A stretch of 64,000 bases of DNA from Anthoceros angustus (lineage: Eukaryota > Plantae > Anthocerotophyta): the NCBI GenBank assembly GCA_010909165.1, contig MU008192.1, forward strand, positions 434,001-498,000. The letters run 5' to 3'. Under the pieces are notes generated by a model. The model was given only the letters and a program-made list of their open reading frames with translations, had not been told where the DNA came from and ran no database searches. The translations under genes and the position numbers were made by a program. This document shows positions 29,162 through 35,752 of this stretch, in pieces (position 1 is the stretch's first letter; the number at the start of each line of letters is the position of its first letter).

Positions 29162-30415
29162 TCATAGGCGGAAGTTGTCAAGAATGTGCGCAATGACATC
29201 CGCGCCGTCCCCGTGCCTGGCAGCAACCTTCACCTGAATCGTGTTGTGCGCGGCGAAGGATCCGAAGCTGATGTCCACTCTTCGCCAACTCATCTGGCTG
29301 AGCCCGGACACCATCTCCTCCTCCGCGTCCTCCACCCCGGGCTTGTCCCCGTTCAGCAAGGGTTTCAGATCCGCCGTAACCACAGCCCCAGCCCCAGCCC
29401 CAGCCCCAGCCGCAGCCTCCATGCCACCATCCGGCGCCTCCTCCACCCGCATCACATGCGGGTACTTCTCGCTCACCGGCTCCTGCTTCACGGGCGGCAC
29501 GTCGGACTCCCGCCGGATGGACGCCGTCCGCCATCCCACCAGATGGTCGAAGGACACGTTCGCATAGGCCGCCCGGGCCTTGAACGCCTTCAACCCCGCA
29601 AGAAACCTCCCCTCCTGGCAATCCGTGGCCATCCTCCGGAGCAGCGGCAGCCTCCCCCCGTCCCCGTCCGTCAAGAAGAGATGCCTCCCGGTCGGGCCGA
29701 CGAACCAGTGCGCCATGGCCGGCGCCAGGGCCTCCAGCGCCCGCACCCCGAACAAGAAAGGCAGCTGGCCGTTCCCCCGCGACCCCAGGTGCGGGGTGGC
29801 CAGGGTCACGAAATTCATCGCCTCCAGCCCCGCGATCCTGCTGCTGCCATCCCCTCCTCCTCCTTCCCCGTCTCCCTGCACCAGCTGCCCTACCGCATAC
29901 CTGGCCACCAAACCCCCGAGCGAATGCGCCACGAAGGAGATCTTCCGCGCCCCGGGCGTCCGATCCACCACCTCCTGCACCTCCTCCGCCAGCCGCCTCC
30001 CCATCACGTCCACCCCGTTGAAGGTCTTGAAGGCGGAATTGCACACGCTGCAATGCACCACAACCTTGTCCGGCAGCCGCTCCCGGAACTGCTCAGCCGC
30101 AAAGCGCCAATTGTTGGCGCTCCCGACAATGCCGTTCACCAGCACCACCAGATGCTCCGCCGGCTCGATCCTCCCCGCCGCTGCATCCTGCGCGGAATCC
30201 ATCGCTCCTGCCGGCGTCCTCGTCGTCGAATTGACGCTCCTCCTCCCGGATCCCGCAAAGCAGCACCAGGAAGCATTCAAATCCGCGGCTGCAAGAGCAG
30301 CAGCAGCGACAGCGGCCTCCCCAGCGTCTTCTCCGGCGTCTCGCACGTCTCGCGCGTCTCGAGCGTCTCCCGACCCGGCCGCGAGCGTGCCCAATCCGTC
30401 CCCTCCTGTCCCCAT
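29162..30415 (-). CDS. DUF676 alpha/beta-hydrolase (putative lipase/serine esterase), intronless
   Basis: HLVVLVNGIVGS, TFNGVDVMGRRLAEEV, ISFVAHSLGGLVARYA (nucleophile elbow), NFVTLATPHLG, YANVSFDHLVGWRTASIRRE, AHNTIQVK. Confidence 0.95.
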   Translation of the reverse strand: MGTGGDGLGTLAAGSGDARDARDVRDAGEDAGEAAVAAAALAAADLNASWCCFAGSGRRSVNSTTRTPAGAMDSAQDAAAGRIEPAEHLVVLVNGIVGSANNWRFAAEQFRERLPDKVVVHCSVCNSAFKTFNGVDVMGRRLAEEVQEVVDRTPGARKISFVAHSLGGLVARYAVGQLVQGDGEGGGGDGSSRIAGLEAMNFVTLATPHLGSRGNGQLPFLFGVRALEALAPAMAHWFVGPTGRHLFLTDGDGGRLPLLRRMATDCQEGRFLAGLKAFKARAAYANVSFDHLVGWRTASIRRESDVPPVKQEPVSEKYPHVMRVEEAPDGGMEAAAGAGAGAGAVVTADLKPLLNGDKPGVEDAEEEMVSGLSQMSWRRVDISFGSFAAHNTIQVKVAARHGDGADVIAHILDNFRL

Positions 30416-30752
30416 TCCAGCGCTACCCGAGCCGGTAAACGCTCCGCTCAGGGCGACACGAGTATGAAGCTCGTCCGGCCTTCCCGCAGCGCCACCTCAA
30501 TATCAAAAATACCTGCATGCATATATATATGCATATGCGGCAGGAGCCTAGTCACCCTAACCGCCGTAAGTTAGTAAGTTTAGCGAGTTAGGAAGGTTAC
30601 CAAGTTAGTTAGTTGCACTGAATGCCGGAGAGCGTTCTGCGGTCTTGATGGAGTCGTCTAATTGTGCAAGACTGATGTGAGTAAGTCGCGCGACTTCTGC
30701 ATGCGGGAAATGGTCTCAAGCGCGTCTCCAACAGTCTCACGACTCGCGCGTG

Positions 30753-32220
30753 ATGGCGGCCTCTTGGAAGCTCGGCGATGGCGTGTGGAGGGGCCAGGTG
30801 GTAGGGAGGGAGAAGCGGTGGGCGGCGGCCGGATGCACGCGAGACAGGTGCCTGGTGCGGGTGCGGAGCGCGGGGCGTGACGCGCGTCGGAAGGCAGGTT
30901 GGTGAGAGCCGGTTGGTGGCTTTGGCAGATGGAGGACGGTGGATTGACTGTCGGGTGGACCAGAGGAGGAGGATCTGGAGGGGAGGCTGGAGAGGCGGCT
31001 GCAGCGCACGCTGGCGGAGCGGCAGCTGCTGCGGCCCCGGGAGAAGGTGCTGGTGGCGGTGTCCGGGGCAGGACTCCGCGGCGCTCATCCGCCTGCTGGC
31101 GGCGCTGCAGCCGGGCTGGGGATGGAGGTTAGGGATTGTCCACTGCGACCACCAGTGGTCTGCGTCTTCCCGCTCGCAGGCCGCACACGTCGCGCAGATC
31201 GCTGCGGGCTTGAAGGTGGATTACTTCCAGGTGAGGCCTTGAGGCGCGAAACCTTCTTTAGGTCTTCAATATTCGGCGTGAATTGGAGAAGAGAAGAGAA
31301 GATGTATAATGTGGAGTAGTGAATTAGAGTATTGGGCCCAAGGATGTTGGAGTGATGAAGGACATGAGGTTGCGTGCAGGCTGTGACCACGAAGCCCGTG
31401 CTCGGGGAGGGGGTGGCGCGGGTGTGGAGGTACGGGGCGCTGCAGAAGATAGCCATCTCGCACGGGTATGGAGTACTAGTGACGGCGCACACGGCGAGCG
31501 ATCGGGTGGAGACAATGCTGTACAATCTCTTCAGGGGGAGCGGGCTTCGGGGGTTGCAGTCCTTGGCGTGGAAGCGGGAGCTGGCTGCGGCTCTGTGTCT
31601 GTGTCCGGAGGTTGCGTTCGGCGGGGAGGAGGGTGGTAGGGTTGCTGGGGCCGGGGGAGGGGGAGAGGAGAGTGGAGGAGGGGAGGGTGGAGCTGGTCAG
31701 GCCTCTGCTTGACACTACCAGGACGGAGATCAGGAAGTTCGGTCGGCATGTGGGGTTACCATTGTGGCCGGATCCTAGCAACCACTCTCTGGAGATAGAT
31801 AGGAACAGGATCCGGCACCAGTTGCTTCCCTATCTTAGACACCACTTCCAGGCGGAAATAGATAAGTCTCTGGCGAGGTGTGCGGAGATTCTGCAAGGTG
31901 AGGATCTGTACCTGGATGGCTTGTGCCACAGTATAAGAAGCAAGGCCGAAACACCGCACTATTCTTCATCCGGGGAGGAAGTAGGCAGGCGGCTCAACGT
32001 CTCGCTGCTTCAAGCTCTTCCAGTTGCTTTGCAGCGCAGGATTCTTAAACAGTTTGTAGAGGGCTTTACTGGTAAGAGTACCACCTTTGATCACGTTGAG
32101 CGACTCAGGATCACAGTTCTGCAGTCACAGAGGAGGGTAATAAGAATGTCCTTGCCTGGGGGATTTTGCTTACAATTTTGTGGGACCCATATGGTCTTAT
32201 CAGAAGCAAGATTTGATTGA
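30753..32220 (+). CDS. tilS: tRNA(Ile)-lysidine synthase of cyanobacterial/plastid (ycf62) type; two apparent frameshifts
   Basis: Predicted exons 30753-30897, 30964-31230 and 31380-32220. Motifs: KVLVAVSG/[frameshift]/[67 protein letters not shown]. Frameshifts fall at a G-run (~31065) and in a G/A-rich tract (~31620-31690). Confidence 0.88.
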
Positions 32221-32584
32221 TGCCTCTTAACTGTAGTAACTGGAGTCCTGTCCAGTCCGGGATGCCCCACCCTTCTTGCTTCAGTACTTCTTGAGGATAT
32301 TCCTGAGTCTGGCTATTTTTATTCTTTTCCCTGAAACTACATACGCTTGAGATCGAACATAAAGACTTCAGATGTCGCAAGTGCCAATCCTTGCTAAACT
32401 TGAAACTTGCTAGGACCCGAGGGAGTGGAGAAAGGTCTACACTTTCTCACAGAGCGGGGTACCAAGCAATTATTCCTCACTCTCTCATTACTTGACAACC
32501 TTGAAGAAGTATGAAGGATATACATACTGAAGAAGCACATTCTCAATGAGATCACTTATCCGAACTCCGGGGGGTAGGCCAGAC

Positions 32585-35500
32585 CTATTCATTAGAGTCT
32601 TCCCTTCTCGCCAGGATCGGCTTGTTTTCCGGTATGGGAGAAAGCGTTCGTTGTATTCTTTTGGAAAGTTCTGTTTCTGTGGTCCAGCGTGAAACAGCCG
32701 TAAACTTGGAAGACCTCGAAAAGAACCTAGCCCATGGAGCATAGCTGCAACTCTGTTGGACCCAGACTACAAGAGCAAGGACCAAGGAGAATGTTGGGAT
32801 CACAATGTCAGCAGCCCTTGAGAAGAAATCATAGCTTGGGTCCGCATACATGTGCTCTGCATTGTTGAAGTAGGGGAAGGGGTGAGACTTCCTGTACCGG
32901 TCATAGAAGTGTGGCAACAGCCGAAGCACTGTTATGCCTACATAGTACAACTTGCGAAGTGGTTTGCCTGTGCACTTCCAAGTGAACCCACCGAAAACCT
33001 GAGGCAAGAGGAAAAGGTCTTGGATCAGGCCTCCATACTCCAGCACCTCTTTTTGCCAATCCCGTGCCCCATGTGCAAAATCCATCTCTGCCACATTTGC
33101 AAAAGGAATCGCTGACTCACTTGCAAAAGGCATCGCTGGCTCAATTGCTGTAGGTGTTCCTACCCAGTATGCTGCATCTTCGGATCTTGGATGACTGACT
33201 AGTACCACTACAATCCCGACAATGTGGAATACTGCCCACAGCGCAAACACCTTCTTTTCTGACGGAACCGAGATCCATTCCTGTGACGTGGATGCCTGGC
33301 TGCGAGCCTTCCACACTTTCTCAAAAAGCCAAGCAAGCAAAAGGAATGCAGTAAGTGTCAAGACCTTCCCAACGTACAGGACAGGTGCATCTCCCTCCCG
33401 TGAAAAACCTGTCACTGATGCAGCTTTGTTTGCAAACAAAGCCTCAGCACCAGTGATCAAAGGAATGGCAAAAGCAACAGCCTGTATTCCTAACATCAAC
33501 AGCGAGATGAAAGCGGTTGAGCTAGGATTTTTTTCCATGTGCCTCCACTGACCAAATATACAAACCACCATGAAGCTCAATGTAACAACGCTTAGGGCAC
33601 CCTCCAGACTTTTCTCGGACATCATCCCTTCTCTCTGGGTTTTATATGTGATTGCTGTGGTGGACACCGTTATTGGTGCAAAACGTATAGGGTCAACGTT
33701 TGTCCTAGTGCTAGAGATGGTGATCTTCACTGATTGAGGCGCAATCCACATCAACGTGGCTGCCGGATACTCAATTACCACCTCCACATAGCAATCCAAA
33801 CCTTGGTGCAGATCGTCAATGCTGCGTAATGTGGACCACTCCTCCTTCACATTTCGGCAACCCATCATATACATTTTGCCACTCTTTGGATTGTACAGGC
33901 CTTCGGTACTGATGTTGGCAATTGTACCAACTTTCAACTCCCCAGCCACTCTCAAAAGCTTGAGCTCATCCAAGTACTCCTTATCGATTTCTTGTTGTCC
34001 AACAGATTCCTCTCCTGCACCTGTGGATCCATTTAAGAATTCTGGGACCCAACTTCTGAAGAGGATATCATTGATGGCAATAAGTGTGAACTGAACAAAC
34101 AAAGGAGTACCATCAACATTCCCCGAAGTTTGAATGAGAAGGTCTTCCCTGAGTGTATCATAGTCAGGATAACTGTTCCCTAGCGAAGGGTACCTGAATA
34201 GAGATGAAGTCGCTCTCGAAATCCTATTTCGAACATTACTTGTTGGTTCATGTCTGTCGAGAAGTGCCAGAGCCAATTTGATCTTGGAGTACTCATATTG
34301 GATCTTTGTCCTCCAAATTACACCTTGTCCTTGAGGGTTCAAGGGCAGGAAGAAGGAGAGGGGATGGAAAAATTGGGGAACAGTGCTGGTGTCATTGGCG
34401 TCAAATTGGCGGGTGCTAGAGATGTTGCCCACTAAAGTGCCACGCTGCAAGATAGTGAGAGCCATAGGCATGTACAGACAAATTCTCACATCACAATCTT
34501 CTCGTGTTGTGGTCTGCAGCTGAATATCACTCTCGTTGCCCCGACAAGCTGCCATGCAAAGAACACCAGATTTGCTGTCCCATGACCCCTCGGCAGTCAG
34601 TGTCATGCCATTGTTGCAGCCAGTCTTTTCATAAGCTGAGTAATCGTCCTCCGAGCTCCCTACTAGGCCAATCACTGCACTCACTACACTGGTGTAACTC
34701 CCTGATCCATTTCTCTGGGCTTGACTGGAATTGTCATACATACAGAGTAGGTTCCTCATAAAGAGTTTGGCCTCAGTGACAGACTTGTAGTCCCGAGCGT
34801 CTGAGAAAGGCCCAATCCTACTACAGAAAGAGTGAGAAACATTGCATGGCCAGTTCTGCTGCACGGAGAAGCCAACCCACCCCTGAGCCACCTCAGCCAG
34901 AATGGAGCAAAAGGAAGGATCTCTGTACACATTCCGTTCCTGCACAGACTCCGTGACGGAGGCCTCATTACATGTTGCGGCAGTCAGGTTTTGTGCATCG
35001 AAACGGTAAGGCAATCCGCTGCCGAAAATCAGTGATGAGAGCTTGATATCCGCAAAACTACTGTCAAGGCTTCGCAATTTCCCCCGAACGGCCGGTGTAG
35101 CCAGAGATATGGAGCTAGGATAGTGAAGCTGCAGAAAGTAACTACAATCCTGCTGGTCCTTGTTTTTATCATCCCAGGAATACTGAGTCGTGTGGTTTCC
35201 GTCCAAAGCCGAATAGATGGGACGAGGCACAGTGCAACCAAGCATACAAAGCACCCTCTGCGTTTTGGTCGCAACATAGTACCCTTCCATAGCAATGCTC
35301 AAAAGGGAAAAGCCAGGATAGGCTCGAAAGTAACGGCTCTCATACGCTGATTGGTCACTGAACGAGAGACTCATTGATGTGGTCATGGCAAGCTCTAAAA
35401 CTCCACGTAATTTGCTCCTCAGAACTCCATTAAATCCAGTCACAAGAAAGTTTGTAAGCTGCTCAACCGGCCGCTGAGATGCATCATTACTGAGAAAGGG

Positions 35501-35752
35501 CAGAAAGGATTTTCCGGATTCCTGTATCCAGTCACCATTCACAAACGAAGGGTTCCAAGCCTCAACATCTGAATCCTCACTCGAAATAAGCTCCCCCTGA
35601 ACTGTGCATAGCTCCTTCAACTTAGCTTCACGCTCCCTGTCAACCCCATCGGCTCCCCAAGGAGCCAGCAACAGGAGCACACACAAAAGGGCCACCATCC
35701 CTGTCTTCGCAAACCTCACAGGCATCCTGACACCCGCCCCGGCGGCGTGCAT
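32585..35752 (-). CDS. DUF2921 family multi-pass membrane protein (1055 aa)
   Basis: Signal peptide, large luminal region (AEGSWD..G.LCM.AC, GLYNPKSGKMYMMGCR) and C-terminal TM region with DLFLLPQV..YYVGITVLRLLPHFYD. Intronless. Confidence 0.93.
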   Translation of the reverse strand: MHAAGAGVRMPVRFAKTGMVALLCVLLLLAPWGADGVDREREAKLKELCTVQGELISSEDSDVEAWNPSFVNGDWIQESGKSFLPFLSNDASQRPVEQLTNFLVTGFNGVLRSKLRGVLELAMTTSMSLSFSDQSAYESRYFRAYPGFSLLSIAMEGYYVATKTQRVLCMLGCTVPRPIYSALDGNHTTQYSWDDKNKDQQDCSYFLQLHYPSSISLATPAVRGKLRSLDSSFADIKLSSLIFGSGLPYRFDAQNLTAATCNEASVTESVQERNVYRDPSFCSILAEVAQGWVGFSVQQNWPCNVSHSFCSRIGPFSDARDYKSVTEAKLFMRNLLCMYDNSSQAQRNGSGSYTSVVSAVIGLVGSSEDDYSAYEKTGCNNGMTLTAEGSWDSKSGVLCMAACRGNESDIQLQTTTREDCDVRICLYMPMALTILQRGTLVGNISSTRQFDANDTSTVPQFFHPLSFFLPLNPQGQGVIWRTKIQYEYSKIKLALALLDRHEPTSNVRNRISRATSSLFRYPSLGNSYPDYDTLREDLLIQTSGNVDGTPLFVQFTLIAINDILFRSWVPEFLNGSTGAGEESVGQQEIDKEYLDELKLLRVAGELKVGTIANISTEGLYNPKSGKMYMMGCRNVKEEWSTLRSIDDLHQGLDCYVEVVIEYPAATLMWIAPQSVKITISSTRTNVDPIRFAPITVSTTAITYKTQREGMMSEKSLEGALSVVTLSFMVVCIFGQWRHMEKNPSSTAFISLLMLGIQAVAFAIPLITGAEALFANKAASVTGFSREGDAPVLYVGKVLTLTAFLLLAWLFEKVWKARSQASTSQEWISVPSEKKVFALWAVFHIVGIVVVLVSHPRSEDAAYWVGTPTAIEPAMPFASESAIPFANVAEMDFAHGARDWQKEVLEYGGLIQDLFLLPQVFGGFTWKCTGKPLRKLYYVGITVLRLLPHFYDRYRKSHPFPYFNNAEHMYADPSYDFFSRAADIVIPTFSLVLALVVWVQQSCSYAPWARFFSRSSKFTAVSRWTTETELSKRIQRTLSPIPENKPILARREDSNE

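Follow-up and report, generated by a model that had tools for sequence, protein, structure and literature searches.

A nuclear gene for tRNA(Ile)-lysidine synthetase in the hornwort Anthoceros angustus: likely descent from plastid ycf62 and two frame breaks at G runs of the assembly

Nuclear homologues of the bacterial gene tilS, which encodes tRNA(Ile)-lysidine synthetase, have already been described in plants. RSY3 of Arabidopsis (At3g24560, UniProt F4J7P7) is predicted to reside in plastids and mitochondria and is indispensable for the development of embryo and chloroplast (PMC11938285; bioRxiv 10.1101/2025.11.24.690252). A function in both organelles is expected of it (bioRxiv 10.1101/2025.11.24.690252), and plant organelles reportedly process lysidine further to ava2C (PMC11938285). 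In the seed-free plant Selaginella kraussiana, a nuclear TilS homologue with a conserved catalytic domain has been reported to be devoid of a targeting sequence, and a nuclear-encoded tRNA-Ile(CAU) has been proposed as its substrate (PMC11573648). In several streptophyte algae the gene, called ycf62 or tilS, is located in the plastid DNA; its loss from the cpDNA has been dated to the emergence of land plants or shortly before it (Turmel et al., PMC1277820). The TilS proteins of cyanobacteria and of Aquifex aeolicus (1WY5) comprise an N-terminal PP-loop domain and one helical domain, without the second C-terminal domain, TilS_C.

The window analyzed here, i.e. the whole stretch of 64,000 nucleotides from the hornwort A. 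angustus, contains a TilS coding sequence at positions 30753-32220 of the plus strand, which in the assembly is spread over three reading frames. We consider it quite probable that, all parts of this reading taken jointly, we are dealing with an ordinary, expressed nuclear gene for an organelle TilS, that it originated from the plastid ycf62, and that both breaks in its reading frame are assembly errors. Like RSY3 and the S. kraussiana gene, it is a plant homologue of bacterial tilS that resides in the nucleus, and like the S. kraussiana gene it belongs to a seed-free plant; unlike the S. kraussiana protein, its product has a putative leader. Our gene model, which gives a protein of about 418 residues with X placed at both breaks, is listed below together with the neighboring genes.

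29162-30415, minus strand: intact gene for a DUF676 putative serine esterase (PF05057, E = 1.6e-59), upstream of TilS and divergent from it
30753-30897, plus strand: exon 1, an open reading frame in frame 0, with the ATG plus 48 codons for an Arg-rich N-terminal extension, a putative organelle-targeting peptide
30898-30963, plus strand: intron 1 as supported by comparison, 66 nt, GT..AG, phase 1, with frame-0 stops at 30903 and 30945
30964-31230, plus strand: exon 2, the start of the PP-loop ATP-pyrophosphatase domain including SGGQDS (PF01171/TIGR02432 positions 9-61)
31065-31068, plus strand: break 1, GGGG in place of GGGGGG, an assembly error
31231-31379, plus strand: intron 2, 149 nt, GT..AG, phase 0, its splicing seen in contigs
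31380-32220, plus strand: exon 3 (the last), with the remaining PP-loop domain, the insert and the substrate-binding domain; stop codon at 32218-32220
31590-31692, plus strand: coding insert of about 30 residues before LVRPLL
31623-31626, plus strand: break 2, a change from frame 0 to frame 1 at a GGGG run, probably a compressed GGGGGG
31993-32160, plus strand: TilS substrate-binding (helical) domain, PF09179
32585-35752, minus strand: intact gene for a DUF2921 protein (PF25333, PF11145), downstream of TilS and convergent with it

The assignment of the coding sequence to TilS, originally made from the sequence alone, is borne out: all motifs on which it was based were found in the alignment, and the profiles PF01171, TIGR02432 (lysidine_TilS_N) and PF09179 match the predicted protein. 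The first two profiles match the pieces encoded at 31066-31230, 31380-31610 and 31693-32217, which correspond to profile positions 9-61, 80-139 and 144-189 of 189. All three PP-loop pieces exceed the Pfam cut-off of 27 bits, and the TIGR02432 scores (36.5, 59.9 and 41.8 bits), each of which is below the cut-off of 93.6 bits when taken alone, surpass it when summed. The match to the substrate-binding domain of TilS reaches 27.5 bits against a cut-off of 21 and covers residues 101-156 of the piece encoded from 31693 onwards. The protein has the short architecture of the cyanobacterial type, in which a PP-loop ATP-pyrophosphatase domain is followed by a helical tRNA-binding domain without TilS_C. 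With this respect the hornwort protein resembles TilS of cyanobacteria and A. aeolicus; on the other hand, the bacterial proteins possess neither the leader nor the insert that precedes RPLL. The closest solved structures matched by the orthologue P0002 are those of TilS from A. aeolicus (1WY5), Geobacillus kaustophilus (3A2K) and Escherichia coli (1NI5), and the Atlas model of the Picea orthologue superposes on a short cyanobacterial TilS cluster, also without TilS_C, with TM scores of 0.75/0.91.

The gene had been predicted to be nuclear, and this conclusion holds, because a spliceosomal intron is spliced in RNA contigs and because the flanks are nuclear genes in conserved order. The order is kept in L001, the syntenic locus of a more distant relative (Logan run SRR33208241), whose TilS shows about 70% protein identity to that of the window. 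An encoding in the plastid is not what we found: the context is nuclear, the introns are spliceosomal and the G+C content of the exons amounts to 51-73%. The streptophyte plastid genes (Zygnema, Closterium, Roya, Spirogyra, Chaetosphaeridium, Nitella, Chlorokybus) come next after the land-plant nuclear genes in relatedness and have a common set of motifs with the window gene, but they reside in plastid DNA, are AT-rich and lack introns and leader, whereas the window gene is nuclear, GC-rich and spliced, and encodes a leader. The arrangement of DUF676 (minus), TilS (plus) and DUF2921 (minus) extends over 29162-35752 in the window and over 2002-8135 in L001, with a short intergenic region common to the divergent TilS and DUF676 genes. 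Within the gene the G+C content drops steeply in the 5' to 3' direction, from 0.73 (30753-30897) and 0.70 (30964-31230) to 0.65 (31380-31610) and 0.51 (31693-32220).

Public contigs from four runs (X1, X2, X7 and X21) were aligned to positions 30500-32500 of the window. X1 represents the same organism (A) and sample as the window, and all of its pieces are at least 99% alike to it; X7 comes from a close relative, organism B, and X21 from another, organism D. X2 is from the same organism as the window, perhaps from its DNA, with a depth of about 7 and many single-base deletions, and looks like error-prone long-read data.

These contigs allow the two GT-AG introns of the original prediction to be told apart in standing. 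For intron 2, splicing is evident from X1 and X7 contigs (joint 31227>31377), with retained forms also present, and L001 has an intron at the same place. Intron 1 stands on comparison with L001 and on the pattern of substitutions, and its spliced form was not seen in any contig of X1, X7 or X21. L001 has a 78-nt GT..AG intron with in-frame stops, of the same phase and at the same place (GRKS|ERAEDLEG, compared to RRKA|EEEDLEG in the window), and its exon 1 peptide is homologous to that of the window. Among the substitutions listed for exon 1 against relatives B and D, five of six are synonymous, third-position changes. An X1 contig begins at 30868, i.e. 29 nt before 30897, which is the expected start of a graph-branch arm at the donor. 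The X1 contig confirms both frame-0 stops, at 30903 and at 30945, and no in-frame ATG occurs downstream of them; therefore, a frame that starts with AUG requires intron 1. Comparison thus supports an intron at 30898-30963, and only if it is spliced does the 48-residue Arg-rich leader exist. The N-terminal exon is indeed rich in Arg, as had been predicted, and its role in targeting is putative. We also considered an alternative acceptor of intron 1 at 30928|30929, which creates a TGA at the junction and leaves the stop at 30945 in frame, and the ATG at 30929 as the start codon, which is in the wrong frame; both candidates were rejected. The depths of contigs with intron 2 retained and spliced are similar (15.8 vs 26.6 in X1, 33.9 vs 31.1 in X7), which may indicate either extensive intron retention or the presence of DNA or pre-mRNA in the libraries.

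According to the original prediction, the reading frame is interrupted by two frameshifts in G-rich runs, which may be errors of the consensus; this is now proven for the first of them and likely for the second. At break 1 the window reads TCC GGGG CAG GAC TCC, two bases short of the motif S-G-G-Q-D-S. Contigs of X1 (depth 43.8), X7 and X21 all have GG inserted behind 31064, which restores SGGQDS, and the extra GG is missing only in the X2 contig, i.e. in the indel-rich data of low depth. Break 1 is therefore an assembly error, in which six G residues have been written as four. For the published A. angustus genome, Nanopore reads were assembled with wtdbg, and Pilon was used for polishing (PMC7027989). 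X2 further shows a bubble of 57/58 nt over the G run at 30872-30875, next to many single-base deletions elsewhere in the gene, which suggests more homopolymer uncertainty in exon 1.

The second frame change, predicted to lie within 31620-31690, is present in the assembly and its actual site is at the very start of that range. Frame 0 ends with PEVAFG at 31622, and we place the shift at the GGGG run 31623-31626, because the peptide read in frame 1 from 31624 (GRRVVGLL...) is homologous to the corresponding peptide of L001 (GRVVSGL...). In the contig of relative D, GT is inserted behind 31622 (GGC GTG GGG AGG) and the frame reads through. The signature is the same as that of break 1: four G residues in the window and two more bases in the relative, at the left edge of the run. 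A hypothetical GGC GGG GGG AGG at break 2 would differ from the sequence of D by a single T-to-G change. The contig of X1 agrees with the window up to 31624 and ends inside the G run, and the next X1 contig begins at 31683, so that 31625-31682 is not covered by any reliable contig of organism A and GGGGGG at 31623 is our proposal for this organism. On this comparative basis we regard a compressed GGGGGG, and thus another assembly error, as the likely cause of break 2.

Should break 2 be real, the gene would be a recent pseudogene or would encode a protein that is truncated by the stop at 31710-31712 and retains no more than the first two thirds of its PP-loop domain, with another enzyme taking over the formation of lysidine. 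The agreement of X1, from the same organism, with the window up to 31624, without the GT of relative D, is compatible with this explanation, as is the lack of a reliable contig of organism A that spans the rest of the G-rich stretch. However, the 175 downstream codons are free of stops and keep every conserved residue, the changes with respect to relatives are mostly synonymous, the transcript is present and spliced, and the other break, with the same signature of GGGG in the window and two additional bases in relatives, is a proven error. We therefore find a genuine frameshift improbable.

The remaining alternative is a third intron at 31611-31692 (82 nt, GT..AG), which would bridge the two frames by joining LCLCPE to LVRPLL. 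It is prompted by the GT and AG located exactly at in-frame positions, and by the NCBIfam profile, which leaves just four positions unmatched between the flanking pieces. Against it, all land-plant nuclear orthologues aligned, including those of Riccia, Sphagnum, Diphasiastrum, Ceratopteris and Psilotum, encode the approximately 30 residues of the insert at this place, and the equivalent of exon 3 in L001 is one unbroken open reading frame (3938-4798), in which the insert region reads ...LCPQVAFVAGRVVSGLEDCQGRKEATGGAALELVRPLL and gives a homologous peptide. Moreover, the segment 31611-31692 has 72% G+C and no pyrimidine tract, and the X1 contig passes the supposed donor by 14 nt without a branch, with no joint reported. 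Since coding sequence occupies this place in L001 and in the orthologues, we rejected the third intron as the cause of break 2 and consider it very improbable.

The gene appears to be under constraint and working rather than decaying. Among the 69 columns conserved in the family (at least 85% identical among the 67 other TilS proteins in the alignment), 68 keep the consensus residue in the window protein, and the single miss is the X (Gly) at break 1. In the frames of our model, the differences listed between the window and relatives B and D comprise 23 synonymous and 14 non-synonymous changes. It is these two counts that indicate a functional gene, and they speak against the suggestion that the frameshifts fit decay after loss of the substrate. 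The connection once drawn to the loss of tRNA genes from Selaginella plastomes does not apply, the host being a hornwort. The analysis supplies a corrected gene model for the hornwort TilS, and it implies that, in this assembly, a frame break at a run of G is not to be read as the mark of a pseudogene.

An exhaustive search with the last exon yielded eight cluster representatives with E < 1e-47, followed by a gap to 1e-29. The best group includes nuclear proteins of Riccia fluitans and Sphagnum (from chromosome-scale records), a transcript of Psilotum, and Logan and JGI sequences, and the second group (E ~1e-29) consists of ycf62/TilS encoded in the plastids of Closterium, Zygnema and Chaetosphaeridium. 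With the Riccia protein as the query, Marchantia, Calypogeia, Ceratodon, Diphasiastrum and Ceratopteris were obtained in addition; the plastid copies of Roya, Chlorokybus, Spirogyra, Nitella and Nitellopsis ranked behind them, ahead of cyanobacteria. The P0008 cluster holds B8LL25 of Picea sitchensis (410 residues), and therefore the clade extends to seed plants. In the look-up for relatives B and D, the proteins of the collection searched were at most 66% identical to the query.

Hence, the gene is not unique to the hornwort lineage, as orthologues are already annotated in bryophyte, lycophyte, fern and conifer records. The original prediction had named the documentation of an equivalent nuclear gene across seedless plants as an argument against it, and in part this is the situation: such genes exist in Riccia, Marchantia, Calypogeia, Sphagnum, Ceratodon, Diphasiastrum, Ceratopteris and Psilotum, and also in Picea. 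What was already known of nuclear TilS in plants thus includes, in addition to RSY3 and the S. kraussiana protein, the annotated orthologues of the window gene. The land-plant nuclear proteins (R. fluitans KAL2653088, Marchantia polymorpha, M. paleacea, Sphagnum, Ceratodon, Diphasiastrum complanatum, Ceratopteris, P. sitchensis B8LL25) belong to the same clade as the window protein and have the same domain order, the insert and an N-terminal extension; their identity to the window in the last exon is 56-61%. The genes differ in their structure: at the window and L001 loci the gene carries two introns and encodes a leader of about 48 residues, whereas M. paleacea (L002 3001-4371) and D. complanatum (L003 3001-4395) have a single exon and leaders of 85-100 residues. 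Because of these single-exon genes, we interpret the two hornwort introns as later gains.

In the phylogenetic trees, green plastid-encoded TilS and land-plant nuclear TilS cluster together to the exclusion of cyanobacteria, with a support of 97 (SH-aLRT) in the quick tree and of 99/97 in the careful one. The nuclear proteins of land plants form one clade nested within the green plastid TilS and composed of the window hornwort, liverworts, mosses, a lycophyte, ferns and Picea, with support of 96 in the quick tree, 91 in FastTree and 74/96.8 in the careful tree (the bootstrap being 74). A constraint that joins the land-plant nuclear proteins with the plastid TilS of zygnematophytes was not rejected (p-AU 0.51); the constrained and the free tree are equally likely. 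The plastid TilS of Zygnema and Chaetosphaeridium also contains the insert before RPLL, which Chlorokybus and cyanobacteria lack, although this site is prone to insertions (see below). The trees, the common insert and the loss of ycf62 from cpDNA (PMC1277820) support a scenario in which the window gene descends from the plastid ycf62/tilS, whose relocation to the nucleus took place close to the emergence of land plants. The origin of this plastid- or cyanobacterial-type TilS had been ascribed to endosymbiotic transfer, with horizontal transfer as the other option, and the grouping with green plastid TilS (99/97) favors the former. The idea that hornworts acquired the gene independently, by horizontal transfer from a cyanobacterium, for which one could quote the high overall similarity to cyanobacterial TilS (36-41% identity of the Riccia orthologue), is hardly credible in view of the grouping of the window protein with the green plastid and other land-plant nuclear proteins, apart from cyanobacteria (99/97, 97/93), and of the insert common to the window and the plastid copies of Zygnema and Chaetosphaeridium.

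If land-plant nuclear TilS is, as we propose, the relocated plastid ycf62, it would represent a cleanly dated late transfer of a gene from the plastid to the nucleus, because it is intronless in a liverwort and a lycophyte, has gained two introns in hornworts, and has an insert in common with the closest algal plastid copies.

The relationship of this clade to RSY3 is a separate matter. No angiosperm protein was found among the best 120 matches of the Riccia orthologue (all with E <= 1.4e-65), which include ferns, a lycophyte and the Picea cluster; this may be due either to fast divergence in angiosperms or to a different origin of their TilS. There was likewise no angiosperm TilS among the 30 cluster representatives named, and a long chlorophyte query returned only chlorophyte plastid proteins and no angiosperm. 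In the Atlas, a 701-residue Streptophyta TilS cluster is found near the Riccia orthologue with a score of 0.95 and 181 of 256 features, a proximity that is not a placement in a tree. It is tempting to speculate, although we find it rather doubtful, that the plastid-derived nuclear TilS distributed from hornworts to conifers is not the orthologue of RSY3, and that flowering plants have lost it and use a different, dual-targeted lineage of TilS, e.g. the mitochondrial type of other eukaryotes. If true, this would mean that an essential enzyme of organelle tRNA modification has been replaced within seed plants without the change having been noticed.

Land-plant plastomes carry trnI-CAU. By analogy with other members of the family, the leader of the hornwort protein would direct it into the plastid, and perhaps also into the mitochondrion, where the PP-loop domain would use ATP to adenylate C34 of the organelle tRNA-Ile(CAU). 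Lysine would then displace AMP on C34, and the tRNA so modified would presumably switch from AUG and Met to AUA and Ile.

Two further observations concern the family at large. The loop between RGSG..GL..W.R and RPLL is a hot spot of insertions in TilS of the plastid lineage, with about 190 inserted residues in P0054 and about 400 in P0048, a plastid protein of a chlorophyte. P0054 (EukProt, 682 aa) and P0113 (786 aa), both with an amino-acid composition that looks nuclear, pair inside cyanobacteria (100/99), away from the green plastid TilS.
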